Notes: generated by a model not told the origin, from the sequence alone. DNA of 64,000 bases from Lepidodermella squamata (GCA_047495785.1 JBLDXI010000009.1:1302001-1366000); one strand, 5' to 3'; positions 20,654-41,187 are shown, counted from the stretch's first letter. Made by a program: numbers and translations.

Positions 20654-23050
20654 TTATTCGTGTTCATCCTGCGGATGGCTCTGTCTTTGGCTCTTTCTCA
20701 GAATCAGCGACATAGCTTGCCAGTTGATAATCGCCGAAGTTACAGTTGAGCTGAATAGTAGCAAAAATGCCATCAAGATATGCTGATTCAGGGCATTGTT
20801 AATGACATTAAGAGCAAGCACGCCGCCAACCATGAGCGAAGCTTGATTTCCAACAGCTTGGCGAACGTACTTCATCCCCATCGCTTTTTCAGCCCGTCGA
20901 AGTTGGTAAGCCAACAGACCTGAAGCAAGCAGTAAGACGGCATTCATGACTAATAGAGCTATTTCGAATGCATGCGAAGTGTTGGAGTAGCAAGCGCCGA
21001 TATAGCTAATTTTGAGGACATCATTCTCGACATCATTCACGACTTCTCGCTGCGTCTCAAAGTAAAGAGACGGGTCAGTTGCCATCCATGCCAAGAGTGT
21101 AATCAAAATCGCGATGAGATAAATAAAGAATAAGAGAAGCAAAAGAGATTCTCGGATTGGTACATCCCTATTACTAGATGTGTGCCGAACGACTCGATGC
21201 TCAAAATACGAACTGGAATCCGTGGAAACCTTAGGATTCCGTTGTGTTGAATTTGTCGAATTTGTAGTATTTGCAGTATACCATGTCGTCCGCTGATTTC
21301 TTATAGACTGCGATGATTTCCGTCGATTACTCGCGGCTTTTGCAACGTAAAGCCTGACGTAGAGGAAAATGTGTATCCCAGAGAGACCCAACACGGCAAG
21401 AGATGTCCTGGCAATGCAGAGGACATTCGCTTCCCTAATTTTCATCTGAGTCGAATAAAGAACCGCTGATAAATTCATGAAAATACACGCAAGTGTGGTA
21501 ATGCTGATTTTGGTCTTAGGGTAATCTTGCTGAATTTCCTGTAAATTGCGATGCGCAATTTTGAAGCCCGCCATCGCTATGTTTAACAAAGACACAAAGA
21601 TTGCCCAGGCTAGGACAACTCCAAAAACAACCTGAGGAACTTCATGATAGTCGTACAGAATTTCGATAGAATCTTTTGGCGGTAAGCCAGTCTTCGTCTT
21701 CCAACTTATTGGCTGTGAACTCTTCATTTCGTAGTCATCAATGCCGTAACCCGAAGCGTTGGACTTCCTTAAAAGTCTAGCTAATATTTCATAGCCACTC
21801 GATCGCGACCATCTCATTACATATTGCACTTCATCATCCATTTCGAGTCGTTCGGAATATTTTACGAAGCCAGTTCTAACCCCGGTGTAGGTAACTTTCC
21901 CGACAGTTGCGTTTACAACGTTCAACACCAAGTTCGGATTAGTTTTGTAGTCTCGCAGTGAAAGGTTCATTGTTTTCAACACCTGTTCTGCTTTGTCCAA
22001 CGTTACAGCGGCCTGAAGAGCCATGTCGTAGCAAATGTGCCGGCGATCGTAATCGCCGCTTCGCGAATTGTTCATCGCCTTATCCGCTAATTCTTCAACT
22101 TGATTGACATCTAATCCGAAAAAACTGCTCGGGCCATTGTTCGCCATCGCAACTATTGCAGGACCAATGCTGAACGTCAGCTCTGCTTGAGATCGCAAAA
22201 TTTCAGGTGTACAGCCGGCTGGCAAAGCTGGTAAAGGGTCCATAACTGGTTGGTTATTCGAATCGATGATGAATACGTATTTCGGCCCTGATAACCCGAA
22301 ACGGTGAGCCCAGCATAAAAACTTGACTGTATTTCCAACATCCGAAAATTGGGCGATAATAATTCGAGCTCCGCTGTCTCTCAACATGGCCATTGAAATG
22401 TCGTCCACGTCAAGAAATGCGTTGAAGAATTGAATGTCGAATCCTAATTGTTGGCTGAAGTCGTAGAAAGCAAGGCCCATTTGAACGTTGAAAATGTTAG
22501 CGGCATGCATGAACACCGCAATTTTCTTCCATGTCTTCTGTTGGCTGATGAAAACAGCCCTAACAAGGGTTGTCATCTCACCCGATGGGCGAACCCGGTA
22601 GAAATTAGGATAGACCTTACGATTAGCTGTGAAATAGGGTGCAGTACAAGCCGATGCGATTGTAGCCATTCCGAGGTGATGAACGACCTTGCCAAGACTG
22701 TTGCAGCCTGGGGTGAAGGTCGAGCCAACTGTTAAGGGTGATTGAAACGCGTTCATCTCGGTATCGAAACTTCGGGAGAATTTGACAGCTTTCGAAACTA
22801 ACAGATCACTGTTACGAGTTTCGTCTTCGAAAACTGGTTCAATGGCGTAATCTGGCAGGATATCGGTTCGATTATTTGCCAGTTTCGTGACAAGTTCAGT
22901 TACAGCTCTGCAGTGCTTGCCATCGCGCGGTTCTGCCCCGGTGAAGGCCATAGTGAATAGCAATTTCAAGCGATACGGTTTGCTAATAGCCAAAACATGT
23001 GTTATTGGCAAGACGAAACTCAAGAGGACGATCACCCTTAATTTTTCCAT
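20654..23050 (-). CDS. Intronless class C GPCR, GABA-B-receptor-like (Venus flytrap plus 7TM, no Cys-rich domain)
   Basis: Signal peptide MEKLRVIVLLSFVLPITHVLA; NNRTDILPDY, YPNFYRV, WKKIA, ARIII, GLSGPKYVFII, PPKD; seven hydrophobic segments with AWMATDP at the end of TM4. Confidence 0.88.
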   Translation of the reverse strand: MEKLRVIVLLSFVLPITHVLAISKPYRLKLLFTMAFTGAEPRDGKHCRAVTELVTKLANNRTDILPDYAIEPVFEDETRNSDLLVSKAVKFSRSFDTEMNAFQSPLTVGSTFTPGCNSLGKVVHHLGMATIASACTAPYFTANRKVYPNFYRVRPSGEMTTLVRAVFISQQKTWKKIAVFMHAANIFNVQMGLAFYDFSQQLGFDIQFFNAFLDVDDISMAMLRDSGARIIIAQFSDVGNTVKFLCWAHRFGLSGPKYVFIIDSNNQPVMDPLPALPAGCTPEILRSQAELTFSIGPAIVAMANNGPSSFFGLDVNQVEELADKAMNNSRSGDYDRRHICYDMALQAAVTLDKAEQVLKTMNLSLRDYKTNPNLVLNVVNATVGKVTYTGVRTGFVKYSERLEMDDEVQYVMRWSRSSGYEILARLLRKSNASGYGIDDYEMKSSQPISWKTKTGLPPKDSIEILYDYHEVPQVVFGVVLAWAIFVSLLNIAMAGFKIAHRNLQEIQQDYPKTKISITTLACIFMNLSAVLYSTQMKIREANVLCIARTSLAVLGLSGIHIFLYVRLYVAKAASNRRKSSQSIRNQRTTWYTANTTNSTNSTQRNPKVSTDSSSYFEHRVVRHTSSNRDVPIRESLLLLLFFIYLIAILITLLAWMATDPSLYFETQREVVNDVENDVLKISYIGACYSNTSHAFEIALLVMNAVLLLASGLLAYQLRRAEKAMGMKYVRQAVGNQASLMVGGVLALNVINNALNQHILMAFLLLFSSTVTSAIINWQAMSLILRKSQRQSHPQDEHE

Positions 23051-24095
23051 TCTGATATCGTTTAAGAATTTCCTAGGCGCAAATAATAGCAAAAGGATTC
23101 ACTATTCTGATGGCTGGTCATATAGTATGGAATTCTGAATATATTGCTTGTATAAATTTAGATCTTAGGCTAAGGCAGTTTTTGAGATTAGGAAGCTAAT
23201 TTCAAGCTTAAGTGAGGAATGCCTGACTTTGTGCGTCCAGTGACCGTGCACCATTAGATGCGCGGGAGGGGAGAAACCGGAGAGATGTAAACCAATACTT
23301 TGCCACTTTGCCATATCATTCGATTTATTTTCGCACAATGCTTAAAACAATGCCATCCGTTGTATTGGATTGAAATAACCTTTTTGTACATTCTCGGTAC
23401 GCAATTCTACGCAATTCGAGGGGTATGCCGTCTTGTTCAGCAAAATTTGAACGAAGATTTGAGACATTTTTCAGTTGATATGTTGGCGTCCTATGCAGCT
23501 CGTCGGCATTAAGCATGCGAACTTCCTGTTGAACATTTTCTCATCCGACCTGCCACGAGAGCGTGATGAACGTGTTTCGTTACAAGTTTTTACCAGGCTC
23601 CTCTCGAAATTATTTGCTCAGTAACTAAAAAAATTCAGATTTGGCGCGGGGTATGAGGAAGTCTATTAAAAGGTCATATTCAACACCGAAAACAGGAAGC
23701 TCTGAGCTTATTCCGGCTATTAGGTATCGGCATACCTTAGTTCGGATAAAATCGCGAATTTCAAGTCAGGTATTTTGCGTTTTATTGTGAAACTCAAGGA
23801 ATCATCATTTTTGGCAATAAATTGTAAAAAAATGCGAATAATAAACGCGGATAATTGCACAGTAGCGAGAGTCACAGTATCATATACCAAATAAATTAAA
23901 GCCGGAATACTATTCGAGTCAATTTTTAGCGAGGTTTCACCTCTTATTCGCTGCACAGCAGCTAAAACCGTAATAAATTTTTCTAGCATTTTTTACCAAT
24001 TTTTCGAAATAAAAAAAATGATTAGCTTCTATTTACAGTCAAGCGGATTTGCGTATATACTGGTTCAAGCGGAAGTTTCTGAGAAATTTCTGTTT

Positions 24096-34105: not shown

Positions 34106-35511
34106 ATGGCAGCGTTTTTGTGTTATGCTATCCTATTAATAGCCCACTTCGGCTCAATTTCAGCTAATGGTAACTTGAATGAGAAAATAATTGAATTTAA
34201 CGTAACGACTTGAAATAAATTTAAGGCGGCTTTTTGGCATATCTACGCCAAGCCCAGACCAGCTCTGGAACCCATCTGCCAGCTGGTTCCTACTACGGCC
34301 AACCTCAGTACCAACCTCAAAATGAACACGCAGAGCCTGCTCATCGCCCGGCTGTTCCGCAGCACCCAGTCACCCCGCACTACAACCAGGAGTACTACGA
34401 TTTCCAATATTCCCAACAGCAAGCCTGGACCAACAGCAACTACCGTCCAGTTATCATCCCGATCAGGCCGGTCCCTCCGCCACCGCGGCCGCACGAGTAC
34501 TACCCGATCCCCCCGATTGATGTCCCAGCCGAAGAAGTGGAGCCACCGAAGAAGAACTCGACCCGTCGCGTCACCACAGTTTCGCCTACAACTGTAAATC
34601 GCCACCAATCGAGCAACGTAACTGAGCATCAAACTACAACTCCGGCGGTTTTGACCACGAACTGGCAATGGAGTGAGAAAAACGAGACGATTCACGAAAA
34701 TAACGCGACCATCATCGACGAGCCTGTTATCCAGTTCGAAAATACTACAGTTGCCATTGAGGTTGAAAATCAAAATTCAACCCAGCTTAACGTCACGGAG
34801 CATTCGGAGGTTGACAGCCATAACTCCACCCAAGCAGCTAATTCAACGGTTACTATTTCGGCTTCAAACAGCACGGAATCTAATAACCAAACTATTTTCC
34901 GAGTCAGGCGAAGCAAAGATCCTCTCGAGGAACTGGGCGCTGCTTTCCATGCCTTGAACAACCTGAGCAATGGCAGCCTTGAACGTGTCGTTAACAAGTT
35001 CTTCGACATGGCTTCTAACCTATCCGACGCTATTGAGAATGCGACAACCGTTTTCAACATGACCCTCCACGACTGGGATGTATCGAATAATGAAACAAAG
35101 TCAACCAACCTAACAAGCCATGGCCATAAGTCGAAGCTCCTTTCCCACGGTATGGACCGCATCGGAATGGGGTCTATTATGGTGAATGAAGCTTCAAACG
35201 GCTCACTAGCTCAAAATATTTCGCTTTTCGTAAATAACGCCACGGTTCGAAATGAGACGATTGATAATCTGAATTCGACCGTGCAAAACGCGACTAGTAA
35301 CGGCCACCTTGCTAAATTATTCGCCAAGCATCACATTGAGGGTGACGCTTTCGCTCAGCATAACATGACCAACACCACTTCCTGGCCACCGAAAATCAAC
35401 TCAAGCAATTTTACTACTGCTTTGCCTGATATTAAGAATTTAAATTTGACAACCATCGTCTTTCCAACTACGACCCAAAAGGCGAAAGTGACGACTAAGC
35501 AGGACCATTGA
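34106..35511 (+). CDS. Secreted P/Y/Q-rich, Asn/Thr-rich glycoprotein of unknown family; 2 exons
   Basis: Signal peptide MAAFLCYAILLIAHFGSISA, one phase-1 intron, long ORF with about 29 NxS/T sequons (hand count) and an RVRR site. Confidence 0.8.
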
Positions 35512-35940: not shown

Positions 35941-37725
35941 ATGAGAGAACAATTAATTTGCCGATTAATTCCAAGTGTCATCACGGTATTAACTGCGACT
36001 ATCGGGATGAAAGGTTAGTGTCAAAAATCACTTGAAGCTCTTAGAAATTTTTATTATTTTTCAGCTATTCCAATGATCCGTGCTCAAAGTAGGAATAATG
36101 CCAATTTCATATATTGTAATTTTTGGGCTTATTTCCAAGGTCTTCCTCGCCAACAGCTCCTTCCCCTGCCCAGCAGCATGGCTCAAGCAAAATTCGTTGA
36201 CTCGCTATCATTCGGACCCGAGAGTTTAGCCGATATCACCAACGACTGGCGAACTAGCTGCTACGCCACTTTGAATCGAACAACTAATAGCGCCCAACTG
36301 AGCCGTCCAGATGGCAGATATGTCGTAGGATCCATCTGGAGCAAAGAGGTATCACCTCTAAAAATACCAAGTCCGGAGATGATTGAGTATTTTTTATAGG
36401 CGATTCCACGAAATTATTCGCATTGGCGATTGGAGATGAGATTTCGGCATCAAGACGCGCCACCTAAGGACATAGCTTTTTATTTAATCGCCCTCCCCAA
36501 CGGAACAACACCTGAAAGTAACATTTCCCCCATTTCTTTGCAAAAAAACATTCCAATTCCGCACAGATTGCATTGACGATGGTCTATATGCGATGCCTCC
36601 GGGTAGAACGGGTCTGGGAATTCGGTATTTCGCGAGAACTGGCGTTGTCTACGGCATATTCACTAATTTAGAGGCTCAAATAACGGGGGGCTTGTCGCTG
36701 AATTGGAACAACATTGCACAACAAGGCTCGGCGGCCGATCGAATGACCTTCGATAAATGCTTCATTGGCAGCCCGGACGAAATGACACGTTATGGCCGCG
36801 AATTCATCGCCATTATACAATATTTTAACGAAAGAATATCTGTAAAAAATTTCCCTTGCATTTCGCTGCCACTAAAAGTTGTTTTCTAGCTCACCATTGT
36901 TCCAACTATGGCAAAAGACGTGGCATTGGACTGCTTTGAGCAAGTCAGAGTTGATTTCGATAGTTTGCTAGCTATCAATCCGTGGCCTGTTTACATCGGC
37001 GTCGCGGGTGGATTAGATAACGATCTGTTGGCAATTTCCGAGCTCAGCTTTTTCAATCTTGTTGAACGAGAGTCTCAAACTACGAAAGACGCATTAGCAA
37101 CTTCTAAAACAACTACTCCTACAATAGATACAACAGGATCAACAGCAACGTCAAGCTCGACTACTTCGACAACTGAAGGCATGCCGACTACAACCTTTGA
37201 AGAGTCGACCACAGAAACAACTGAAATCCATAGTTCGAGTACGACTGAAGCCGTTACCAATGGCTATTACAATAGCACTACAGCCTTGATAACTTCAGGT
37301 AATTTCTCCACCTCTACCCTGCCATTGAGCAATACTACAACAATGACGACGACCAATCGAGTTGGGTCAAGCACTACAATACCTCCATTGTCTACGATAT
37401 CCCCATTTTGCACAAATTCGTTTGGTGACCAGTGTGGGGGTGCGATGTTTCGGGGCCAAACATGTTGTACGCCCGGGCTGGTTTGCTCACCAGTAGTCGG
37501 AGGTTCTTCGAAGTGCGTTTTGCCAACGATTTCAGTGACTGCCACTCCGCCTAGGATTACGAGAGTGTCGACGCCGAAAGTGACGCTCTCAACTGCCCCA
37601 GAGAAAATCACCCCTCAAAGTACACCTGTGGCGATAGCTCCAGCTAGTAAGTTTCACTTTCCGATTTTTTCAATAATTTTAATAATTTCCAATAAAATTA
37701 ATTATACACTTTTTTGCCAGATTAG
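35941..37725 (+). CDS. Putatively secreted L-type (ERGIC-53/VIP36-like) lectin domain + Ser/Thr mucin stalk + CBM1-like module
   Basis: Spliced: SLSFGP...W...VGSIWSKE|AIP..HWRLEMRF...TGLGIRYF...C...IIQY...C...YIGVAG...ISELSFF; Thr-rich run; CTNSFGDQCGGAMFRGQTCCTPGLVCSPVVGGSSKC at 37409-37516; start codon and last exon uncertain. Confidence 0.72.
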
Positions 37726-38000: not shown

Positions 38001-40341
38001 ATGTGGACGTTCCTGATTTTGACATATTTTCTCTCACCTAATATCTGTGGCGCAAACTTGGCTCAGAACAAAACAACACGTCTCCGTGTTTTGTTTCTCT
38101 CCCCTATTGCCTTCATCGACCCTCGCCAGGTACTGGCAGGCACAGTCGCGATGGGTTATGTCGCCGATAAGGTCAACTAGACCCGACATTCTTCGCGATT
38201 ATTTCGTCGAGTTCGTGCCTGTTGATGAGTACCTCGGTATACGGGCAACTACGAGCCTAATTTCATTCCGGCGAGATCTGTCAGCCCTTCAATCGCCTAT
38301 AATAGCAGGCCCGGCTATCACAAACGGCTGCAAGGCTATTGGCCCGGTTTTGAAGTACATTCAAACAATTTCGCTTTCAACTTTCTGCAGCGCGCCGTTT
38401 TTATCCGATCCTACTTTGTACCCGAATTTGTTCCTATCACAATCTACCGCAACTAGCACCGCCCTATCTATGGTAGCTTTTATCAAAAATATCGGATCTT
38501 GGAGTCGAGTAGCTTTATTTGCGACGACTTCGAATATTAAAGACTTCTCAACCGCACTACTCCTTAATGATCAACTGATTTCAAACCGTGTAGAGGTCCC
38601 TCTTTTCGATATTATCAATGACGTAACCCCAGAGATAATCAATGGTCTGAAACTGTCTGGAATCAGAATAATTATCATTTCCAACGGAAATTCTGTTCTT
38701 GTCCCCCAGTTCCTATGTGAGGCGTTCAAAGCAGGAATTTCGGGTCCCCGTTATGTTTTCCTTTCTTTCGCAAATGGATTTTCCCTTGCACCTCGGCCCG
38801 GCTGTACTGTCGCCATGCTTCATGAACAGGCAAAACAAATGTTTTACTTTGGAAATGCAGCTAAACCTAGTAGTTACGATCGAATCAGTGATTTAGGTGA
38901 TACTGCTGGGGATTTTGAACAATTCATGGGCCGAGCTACAAATTTAACAATCGATGCTTATTTGACTGCATTCCAGCTGCGGGACACTCTAGTAAACGTC
39001 TTGATTGCTCTGAATGAGACTGATAGGCGACTGAAATCTGAGTTCAATCTCTCCTTGCATGATTACCACTCTAAGCCTGATTTTGTCGCTGAAATCGCTC
39101 GGGAAGTTATCCTGGCTAGTGAACCCATTGGGCTAAGAGTTGGACGAACTTCGTACAGCAAAAATGGCCTGCTTCTAGGCGATATTCAAGTCGTCACACA
39201 ATGGGATCCTTTCGCAGGCATGCGAACCCTCTATTCTGTCCATCAAAGTTTAAACAAGTCTTTTAGCGATGTTGATCTGCAAGGATTTTCGCTGGAAAAA
39301 GTAGCTGAAATTATCTGGCAACCACCTTTAGATCGGCCTCGTGTCAAACGTCTGGCGTTGTCAATCCCACGGGCTATTTTCGTCGTTGAGTGGATTCTAA
39401 TCGCGGTTGGAAGTGCTATAATTATCATAGGTCTAGGACTTATTTTAAGGAACAAGCCTGCTTCCTGGAACTATCGATTTTCAAAGTCGTACTCACTACT
39501 CGGTTGCTTGTGCTTAAATGCTTCCTCCGCTCTGTTCGCCGTTGATCGCTCGACAGGAAGCTCAGGAATAGTCATGGCCGCCTACTTCCTTCTCGGAGTT
39601 GGGATATCAGCAGTTTGCGGACAAATCGCTAGCCGTCTTTATGCGATCAATTCTCACGTGAAGAAGAGCATTAAAAATAGCCACAGAAAATCGCGCAATA
39701 CGGTGAGTCCGACTTCTAACAAAATCAGACCGAAAGCCGTTGTCATATTTCGACACAATTCAGCCGAAATCATGGACGTCCAAAGTCTGAAAATAGGTTT
39801 TGTCATAACTCTACCTAGTTTAGCTGTTTTAATCGGATGGGTGGCCAGTCACAAATTTGTTTGTCTCGAAAAATCTGATGAAATGCCGATTTACAACGAG
39901 TTGTCTGATACTGTTCAAGAAACGTGGTTTGTCAGTTGTTTGATGGCTCCTAATTCCTTGACAGGCTGGTCCCTTCTAAGTTCAGTAGGTGTTGCTCAGT
40001 TCTTGCTGCTATTGTTTTCATTGATGATTGCATTCCACCTTAAACAAGTCAAAGGAGTCGCTGCGAATTGCCCGGAATTTTACGCAATTGCTATCTCAGC
40101 TATAGCAAGCGCCACTCTTTTACCTGCTGGTCTCTTGATAGCTCTGATTCTTGATGAGACTAATCGTCAAGCGGCCATAAGTCTAGCTCTGATCATTTGG
40201 TCTCTCTTTGAATCGTTCACGTTACTTTATCATGGTATTAACAAGAAGAAAGTGATGGCCTATGTGAAATCTCACCATCGCGTGAATAACGGTGAAAGTT
40301 TTGTAGAAGGGTCAACCACAGTTGGACATTTTGATCACTAA
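38001..40341 (+). pseudogene. Intronless GABA-B-like class C GPCR with a frameshift near 38178 (pseudogene or assembly error)
   Basis: Signal peptide and first flytrap strand in one frame end at VADKVN* (38180); RPDILRDY, YPNLF, WSRVA, IRIII, GISGPRYVF and 7TM continue in another frame. Confidence 0.75.
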
Positions 40342-40402: not shown

Positions 40403-40960
40403 GAGTCATAACCCTGATGCAGGTGAAGACAATAAAAATGGAAGGTGTGGATGTGGATCTAAATGGTTTGAAGGACGTTAACAGCGGCACTTATCGAGCA
40501 ATTCGCATGGTTCTATCGGATCAAATGCGAAGAATTTACGACAAAGCAGGCCTAACTGTACTCTTCATCAACGTTACAAGCATCAGTTTCATGTAAAACA
40601 GCTTCCTTAATACAGCAGATCGATCAATTTCTTTTTATCAGGTCTCCGTCAGGTGAATTTCTAGCTCTAATAGACGCCACAATCGACTGTGGCCTTTCAA
40701 TCAAGGACAAAGACGGCTTGAATTCTAGTTTGGCCAGCGCAGTCGCTTCATTGATGGCTGATGGCGCTTTTGATAACAGTTTTGGCCGGCAGTCGCCTGT
40801 TACGCTGGAAATTGTTCACTTCGAATTGGAGTATGCGAGACAGCCTGAGGAAACGGCTGTTTCAAGTGCCTTTGCTCTGTTATCGGGTGACGAAAGACAA
40901 CGCGTCTTGTTCAAAATTATATTTCTGTATCATTCCAGTAATTACCTGTTCAAACATTAA
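40403..40960 (+). CDS. Two orphan exons encoding a SEA-like domain; possible 3' end of the lectin-CBM1 gene
   Basis: Acceptor ttttag at 40402, 49-nt GT-AG intron 40593-40641; joined reading LKDVNSGTYRAIRMVLSDQMRRIY...VLFINVTSISFM|SPSGEFLALIDATID...LASAVASLMADGAF resembles the SEA pattern by eye. Confidence 0.45.
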
Positions 40961-41114
40961 GCTTTTGCAAAATAAAGACAAAATGAAAAAACTTCTGATC
41001 ATAAGTATTTGTAGGAGAGCTAAAACAGCAGGTCAAATCTAGTTTCTAAATGGCATCAAAGCTTATCCCACCTTAAACAATTATAAAACTGAATTTAAAT
41101 TATGTCAAAAGTAT

Positions 41115-41187
41115 CGAGGCTGCCAGGAGTCGAACCTGGAATCTTCTGATCCGTAGTCAGACGCGTTGTCCATTGCGCCACAACCCC
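41115..41187 (-). tRNA. tRNA-Arg-ACG: tRNA-Arg, anticodon ACG
   Basis: GGGGTTGTGGCGCAATGGACAACGCGTCTGACTACGGATCAGAAGATTCCAGGTTCGACTCCTGGCAGCCTCG: 73 nt, stems pair, A and B boxes present, TTTT terminator a few nt downstream. Confidence 0.97.

Follow-up and report, generated by a model that had tools for sequence, protein, structure and literature searches.

A CBM1-derived six-cysteine module with a retained scaffold and a replaced cellulose-binding face in a predicted lectin-mucin gene of Lepidodermella squamata

A locus of Lepidodermella squamata raises the question of what a fungal-type cellulose-binding module (CBM1) is doing in the middle of an animal gene, and whether it can still be regarded as a cellulose-binding module. 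The window, i.e. the whole stretch of DNA that was analysed, comprises 64,000 nt (GCA_047495785.1 JBLDXI010000009.1:1302001-1366000), and all positions are given relative to this window. An earlier note made from the sequence had described a CBM1-like module at 37409-37519 and had proposed that it was acquired horizontally, shuffled into a host gene and probably re-purposed. CBM1 modules with six cysteines are known in the form present in Trichoderma reesei Cel6A. The structure of the predicted host gene, the family membership of the module, its scaffold and binding face, its relatives in the same genome and in databases, and the readings that can be put on these observations are presented here.

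The predicted host gene and its surroundings

The translation of positions 37409-37519 on the plus strand, CTNSFGDQCGGAMFRGQTCCTPGLVCSPVVGGSSKC(V), was reproduced exactly as it had been read before and is located inside an open exon. A model of seven exons was built around it by eye from the sequence and checked by script; the splicing is thus predicted. All exon borders of the model are of the GT-AG type, the predicted reading frame of 2,016 bases is uninterrupted and codes for 671 residues, the first four introns have lengths of 48-51 bases, and the join between exon 5 and exon 6 spans an intron of 2,756 bases. The predicted features are as follows.

35941..36013, plus strand: exon 1 with start codon and hydrophobic signal-like N-terminus, read by eye; donor GTTAGT following AAAG, frame in agreement with the spliced model
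36065..36348, plus strand: exon 2, lectin-like head; GT-AG borders, 51-base intron, open frame
36400..36517, plus strand: exon 3, lectin-like head, with a W-R-L-E-M-R-F stretch similar to the one of paralogue L034
36567..36841, plus strand: exon 4, lectin-like head; unique in the genome
36890..37646, plus strand: exon 5 (757 bases) with the last strands of the head, stalk, CBM1 and linker; acceptor ttttctag at 36889, donor GTAAGT at 37647
37073..37408, plus strand: Thr/Ser-rich mucin-type stalk, residues 312-423 (112 residues; 35% Thr, 18% Ser, no Cys), in the same exon and frame as the module
37409..37516, plus strand: CBM1-derived six-cysteine module of 36 residues, predicted residues 424-459; identified by translation, Pfam, phmmer against the PDB, alignment and column counts
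37517..37646, plus strand: Pro/Thr linker of 44 residues (18% Pro, 20% Thr), ending at the consensus donor GTAAGT after A, phase 1
40403..40592, plus strand: exon 6, first half of the SEA-like domain; phase-compatible with exon 5, 37-40% identical to L032, L033 and L034
40642..40960, plus strand: exon 7, second half of the SEA-like domain and C-terminus; aligns with the paralogue tail exons short of the transmembrane helix and LCCRR tail, end uncertain

In the predicted protein a lectin-like head is followed by the mucin stalk, the CBM1 module, the Pro/Thr linker and the SEA-like domain. The Thr/Pro linkers described in the earlier note were found on either side of the module, with the upstream one rich in Thr and Ser and the downstream one in Pro and Thr. 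The join of exons 5 and 6 across the long intron is supported by their compatible phases and by the fact that exon 6 lacks a start codon of its own that is joined to a signal peptide. Further support for this join is provided by three paralogues (L032, L033 and L034), in which the stalk runs directly into SEA-like sequence within one exon. These paralogues consist of lectin-like heads, mucin stalks and a SEA-like domain, have no CBM1, and end in a transmembrane helix followed by an LCCRR-type tail. The intron inside the SEA-like domain occupies the same position in all three paralogues and in the gene studied here.

The term SEA-like refers to position and weak similarity only, since the SEA domain of Pfam (PF01390) reached 14.0 and 15.5 bits in two of the paralogues, below its cut-off of 26.4 bits, and gave no score for the exons of this gene. 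Pfam searches with each head and tail exon gave no match. One head exon of a paralogue was matched to L-type lectin clusters of the ESM Atlas with values of 0.93-0.94, which is to be taken as a lead only. For exon 4, recognition in the ESM Atlas was below threshold, and its beta-helix matches, which were under 0.9, were discarded. The comparison of exon 5 with paralogue L034 by BLASTP was not significant; in a more permissive tblastn search the C-terminal strands of the head aligned weakly with L034. No membrane helix was recognisable in the predicted C-terminus, where the best 19-residue hydropathy window was below 1.0. A frame-shifted relic of a transmembrane segment downstream of exon 7 (...ICRRAK..., resembling LCCRR; window positions 40880-41042, plus strand) was considered and dropped, as it was supported by no alignment.

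The presence of CYP2-clan P450s and class C GPCRs in the window identifies the host as an animal, and together with the seven-exon predicted model this bears out the description of the locus as an intron-containing animal gene. As the module shares its exon with an intron-bearing gene that has animal-type genes on both sides, it is integrated in the host genome and does not represent contamination.

Several neighbouring features were recorded in addition. A single-exon gene for a class C GPCR (ANF_receptor and 7TM) is located at 38001-40341 on the plus strand, i.e. within the 2,756-base intron of the predicted host gene and on the same strand. Its signal peptide and N-terminus are out of frame with the main ORF, and comparison with its paralogue at 20654-23092 on the minus strand reveals a 1-base frame break with an in-frame TAG at about position 38177; this nested GPCR is either a pseudogene or the result of an assembly error. 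Just upstream of the host gene, an open frame of 425 codons (34234-35511, plus strand) starts with a Pro/Gln/Tyr-rich part, continues with N-x-T/S sequons by the dozen and was matched by no Pfam family; a tRNA gene (41115-41187, minus strand; Rfam RF00005, 58.6 bits) follows closely on the 3′ end of the host gene. The nearest relatives of the P450s of the window were encoded on ENA metagenome contigs (43-47% identity); CYP2 proteins of vertebrates and molluscs came next (32-37%). A look-up for an exact copy of the P450 of the window returned no entry. These contigs (L074-L076; ENA metagenome scaffolds, ERZ23486764 and others) have lengths of 11-17 kb, carry a P450 cluster with the 43-47% identity given above and probably originate from an animal that is distantly related to this one and inhabits the environment sampled.

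A CBM1 scaffold with a replaced binding face

Judged by its sequence, the module genuinely descends from the CBM1 family and belongs to its six-cysteine type. Its scaffold is intact and comprises QCGG, a glycine, the core aromatic as Phe, TCC and the six cysteines. The Pfam check that had been proposed for it was performed with CBM_1 (PF00734), which scored 22.0 bits on the exon 5 product, 23.6 bits on a 63-residue piece and 24.4 bits in a profile scan of the whole genome, in each case above the gathering cut-off of 20.6 bits. The match is restricted to profile positions 4-23 of 29, which was counted against the reading preferred below. In a phmmer search against all PDB sequences, the top eight matches were CBM1 chains, namely the Cel7A CBM and its Tyr-to-Ala mutants, the EG1 CBM and a CBM1-bearing xylanase, with a best E of 0.02-0.03 for the Cel7A CBM.

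An exhaustive HMMER search with the whole exon 5 product against 1.84 billion representatives returned 19 proteins at E<=1e-3, and all of them align in or around the module, their best stretches falling between query residues 133 and 251 (of which residues 174-209 are the module). Most of the matches were obtained through several tandem repeats, each sequence that was inspected proved to be a CBM1-repeat protein, and the top foreign matches to the module showed 43-44% identity. Moreover, the exact-spacing DNA pattern CGG-x7-CC-x5-C-x9-C was found at 26 sites in the 121-Mb genome and its reversed control at none. CBM1 modules account for 23 of these sites (this module and 22 others), and the remaining three are TGC/TGT simple repeats. 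The module is therefore real and no chance arrangement of cysteines. The six-cysteine CBM1 assignment of the earlier note and its CBM1-like cysteine spacing from QCGG onwards are thereby upheld.

The fold prediction that had also been suggested gave a divided result. With CBM1 modules aligned as a guide, the AlphaFold model reached a pLDDT of 88, the top eight matches of this model in a Foldseek search against the PDB were all CBM1 chains, and its superposition on 1CBH gave a TM score of 0.86 and an rmsd of 1.4 A, with an input alignment that itself consisted of CBM1 modules. A single-sequence AlphaFold control, in contrast, had a pLDDT of 72 and matched no CBM1, but only generic knottin fragments at E above 1. 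As the CBM1 fold was obtained with the guided model and not with the control, the fold evidence depends on the sequence evidence.

For the comparison of scaffold and face, the module was placed in an alignment (A1) with 27 others from its genome, and a column was defined as conserved if it was shared by at least 70% of those 27. From QCGG through the last cysteine the module aligns without a gap. It retains every one of the 13 scaffold columns (six Cys, Q, G, G, the core aromatic, here Phe, G, T, G), whereas none of the four face columns is kept (Y5, Y31, Y32 and Q34 in Cel7A numbering). For this split a Fisher exact probability of 1 in 2,380 was calculated, with a test that was chosen post hoc.

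In the CBM1 of Trichoderma Cel7A the flat plane that binds cellulose is formed by Y5, Y31 and Y32 together with N29 and Q34, H4 belongs to the same plane, and a cleft subsite consisting of T17, V18 and T24 also binds cellohexaose (PMC6374431). In the HMMER alignment to Cel7A, the residues of the module are F at H4, G at Y5, F at Y13, V at N29, G at Y31, S at Y32 and K at Q34. The flat face is therefore absent, with G, G, S, V and K in the places of Y5, Y31, Y32, N29 and Q34, and a Phe stands one residue N-terminal of the Y5 position, where it is aligned to H4. The replacement of the C-terminal N-x-Y-Y by V-G-G-S, as read previously, is reproduced by the gapless alignment (N29 to V, Y31 to G, Y32 to S). 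The same reading had put the loss at two of the three cellulose-stacking aromatics; the loss as such is confirmed, but its extent was understated, because all three canonical positions are non-aromatic. Given this face, the module is classed as CBM1-derived by descent, and it would not qualify as a functional type-A cellulose-binding module.

The divergence of the module from its relatives in the genome is correspondingly large by several measures. It is the most divergent of all modules compared (mean identity 0.37, best 0.44), and every other module has a partner with an identity of at least 0.49. The closest module in the same genome is at most 46% identical by local alignment and 44% from Cys to Cys, and no close paralogue of the module was found in the genome at protein or DNA level. 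Among the modules with exact spacing it is the sole face-less one, and with 24.4 bits it is the weakest of all CBM_1 matches in the genome.

Relatives, origin and possible role of the module

The search for further CBM1 copies in the genome, which the earlier note had called for, yielded 30 CBM_1 matches over the cut-off, this module included. At least 29 other, canonical CBM1 modules are thus present, located on GH9 cellulases, mucins and other secreted proteins. They follow signal peptides on GH9 cellulases, on mucins, on Cys-rich repeat proteins and on one protein with an unnamed C-terminal domain.

Two GH9 cellulases (L003 and L004; G000:C25:1116954-1117487 and C19:471015-471227) have two or three N-terminal CBM1 modules with Thr/Ser linkers. 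The GH9 homology of L004 was confirmed, and its best 120 GH9 relatives among 5.8 billion proteins carry CBM2 or CBM3, and CBM1 in none of the 120 cases; the combination of GH9 with CBM1 seems to be unusual. The protein with the unnamed domain (L015; G000:C3:1454245-1454469 and downstream) is composed of a signal peptide, two CBM1 modules, a Thr-rich linker and a C-terminal domain of about 180 residues. A tandem gene pair (L021 and L022; G000:C10:1647998-1650337) encodes proteins with a signal peptide, one CBM1 and Cys-rich CCPG...YDP repeats.

Concerning the way in which the module entered its host gene, the claim of shuffling was sustained in part. The paralogues lack CBM1 and have the SEA-like tail in common with this gene, which fits an insertion; the boundaries of the module are, however, free of introns, so that classical exon shuffling does not apply. 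A second locus (L024; G000:C19:2625641-2628718) gives a further sign of an exchange of heads on mucin stalks in this genome. Its first frame encodes a C-type-lectin-like head, a Thr-rich mucin and the tag ...KILKLLLKYGVP..., and the adjoining frame encodes a signal peptide, two CBM1 modules, a Thr-rich mucin and a similar tag (...ILQLLIKFGVP...). From these frames it looks as if CBM1 modules had replaced the lectin head on the same kind of stalk.

Outside this genome, the best matches to the module that bear names include two proteins called 'CBM1 domain-containing', from the rotifers Brachionus calyciflorus (CAF0963311.1) and Adineta steineri (CAF0846845.1), and a protein of the fungus Serendipita; metagenome or Tara-type sequences make up the rest. 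According to PMC6509783, which cites Szydlowski et al. 2015, the bdelloid Adineta ricciae is the only case outside fungi of a GH45 protein with such a module. CBM1 in animals was therefore documented already by the rotifer CBM1 proteins and the Adineta ricciae GH45; its rarity in animals, on which the earlier note had placed weight, stands, but its novelty does not. No orthology of the rotifer CBM1 proteins to the gene studied here was detected by exhaustive HMMER. The module of the Adineta steineri protein (P0010), which ends in ...RSQLSSIC, has lost the C-terminal aromatics, as has a CBM1 module on a Logan contig (P0013) that ends in ...PGLVCQSFGPERSEC; face-less CBM1 variants hence recur outside this genome.

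Orthologues were searched for in three ways, and none was found by word search, exhaustive HMMER or metagenome scan, a result that was counted against the preferred reading. The word-index protein search with exon 5 gave no match in a length window of 139-441 residues, which would miss full-length relatives; the metagenome scan with exon 5 gave 600 pattern matches, of which none was confirmed; and the exhaustive HMMER search with exon 5 among 1.84 billion proteins returned matches for the CBM1 region only and nothing for the head. The architecture of lectin-like head, mucin stalk, CBM1 and SEA-like domain is absent from all database matches, and a literature search gave no description of CBM1 in an animal lectin-mucin protein.

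In identity, the module stands about as close to the other modules of the genome (at most 44-46%) as to the top foreign matches (43-44%). As it has only 36 residues and these identities are alike, the horizontal origin that had been proposed is not demonstrable for this copy. We infer that a canonical CBM1 of this genome was most likely duplicated into the stalk of a gene of the lectin-mucin-SEA family. The host would be a secreted or surface glycoprotein of 671 predicted residues, with the module placed in a Thr/Ser/Pro stalk of the O-glycosylation type. Afterwards, every residue of the disulfide wedge would have been retained, and the cellulose-stacking face would have been exchanged for small or aliphatic residues. 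From a retained scaffold and a replaced face, a compact, protease-resistant knot without canonical binding to crystalline cellulose would be expected, and its role might be that of a rigid spacer or of a new binding knob.

With modest confidence, and on the strength of sequence comparisons, we lean towards the reading that the module is a CBM1-derived, disulfide-locked knot which has probably lost canonical cellulose binding and may now act within a lectin-mucin glycoprotein, be it as a spacer or as a knob with new binding. The gene context supports this reading, as the paralogues have the same order of domains and the same intron position in the SEA-like domain, without CBM1. The re-purposing proposed in the earlier note is likewise favoured by the pattern of a kept scaffold and a lost face. 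A bolder version, in which a neofunctionalised, cellulose-blind CBM1 scaffold presents a new ligand surface in a lectin-type receptor of a lineage that adopted CBM1 as a general extracellular building block, appears unlikely.

The alternative that survives best, though we consider it somewhat unlikely, is that of a decaying relic, in which the gene or the module is no longer under selection and the face has drifted away, with the scaffold surviving for lack of time. The weakest CBM_1 score and the greatest divergence of all modules in the genome would be in agreement with decay, as would the failure to find an orthologue; moreover, a predicted C-terminus lacking the membrane anchor of the paralogues (transmembrane helix and LCCRR tail) and a frame-broken GPCR in the long intron would fit a degenerating locus. 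Drift that erased the whole face and reduced identity to about 37% should, however, also have hit the scaffold, where no position out of 13 is changed, and all seven exons are open over their full length with canonical splice sites.

Compared with the knot reading preferred here, it is quite unlikely that the module still binds a carbohydrate, be it cellulose, chitin or another glycan, by means of substitutes such as the Phe before the Y5 position, a Val-Val pair or an Arg, and forms a two-site receptor or adhesin together with the lectin-like head. In its favour, this Phe adjoins the lost first aromatic and is aligned to a residue of the flat plane, the cleft subsite of CBM1 offers a second place for binding, and CBM1 is widely used on extracellular proteins of the genome; nevertheless, the three stacking tyrosines and both polar face residues have been replaced, and the genome has no second module in which all of these are missing. 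That the module is no CBM1 but a convergent, cysteine-rich, knottin-like motif of the mucin stalk is highly improbable, for although the single-sequence fold control found generic knottin fragments only and the Pfam match covers two thirds of the profile, QCGG, the glycine and TCC are present, the spacing after CGG is that of the exact-spacing CBM1 modules, the Pfam score exceeds the curated cut-off and every inspected significant match in the PDB and among the 1.84 billion proteins is a CBM1.

In textbooks CBM1 figures as the cellulose anchor of fungi. Its presence in an animal is in itself no news, as rotifers are already on record. New is the natural experiment, in which the scaffold is fully preserved and the cellulose plane erased within an architecture not seen among the database matches. 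If the module is expressed and conserved, it would show that the CBM1 knot can be put to other use, either as a neutral spacer or as a scaffold for new binding, and the genome would contain its own negative control for work on its many canonical CBM1 modules. Should the module be a relic, it would be a record of domain shuffling among the mucin-stalk proteins of this lineage, and if the neofunctionalised reading is true, it would be the first metazoan CBM1 knot re-purposed beyond polysaccharide crystals.

Comparison with known systems

The predicted host protein resembles SEA-domain membrane mucins in having an ectodomain, a Thr/Ser-heavy stalk and a juxtamembrane SEA-like domain, and in its paralogues a transmembrane helix and a short basic tail follow as well. 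It differs from such mucins in that SEA is a weak Pfam match in two paralogues and gives none here, and in that this copy shows no recognisable membrane helix. The rotifer CBM1 proteins named above are encoded by animals, as is this module, but they are small secreted proteins of one to three modules or a cellulase, and none of them combines a lectin-like head with a mucin stalk and a SEA-like domain.

With the other CBM1 modules of its own genome, the module has the six-cysteine framework and the Thr-rich linkers in common. Those modules directly follow a signal peptide, often stand in tandem and are 89-96% aromatic at the three face columns, whereas the present one is single, internal and face-less and is no more than 44-46% identical to any of them.

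As in fungal cellulases, the module is placed beside Ser/Thr/Pro linkers; in contrast to fungal CBM1, which is found at the end of a glycoside hydrolase, it is situated in the middle of the stalk of a lectin-headed animal protein. With the CBM of Trichoderma reesei Cel7A (1CBH/1AZ6) it shares QCGG, the glycine, the core aromatic, TCC and a gapless cysteine spacing from CGG to the last cysteine. Unlike the Cel7A CBM, it has G, V, G, S and K in place of Y5, N29, Y31, Y32 and Q34, which amounts to a natural triple tyrosine knock-out.
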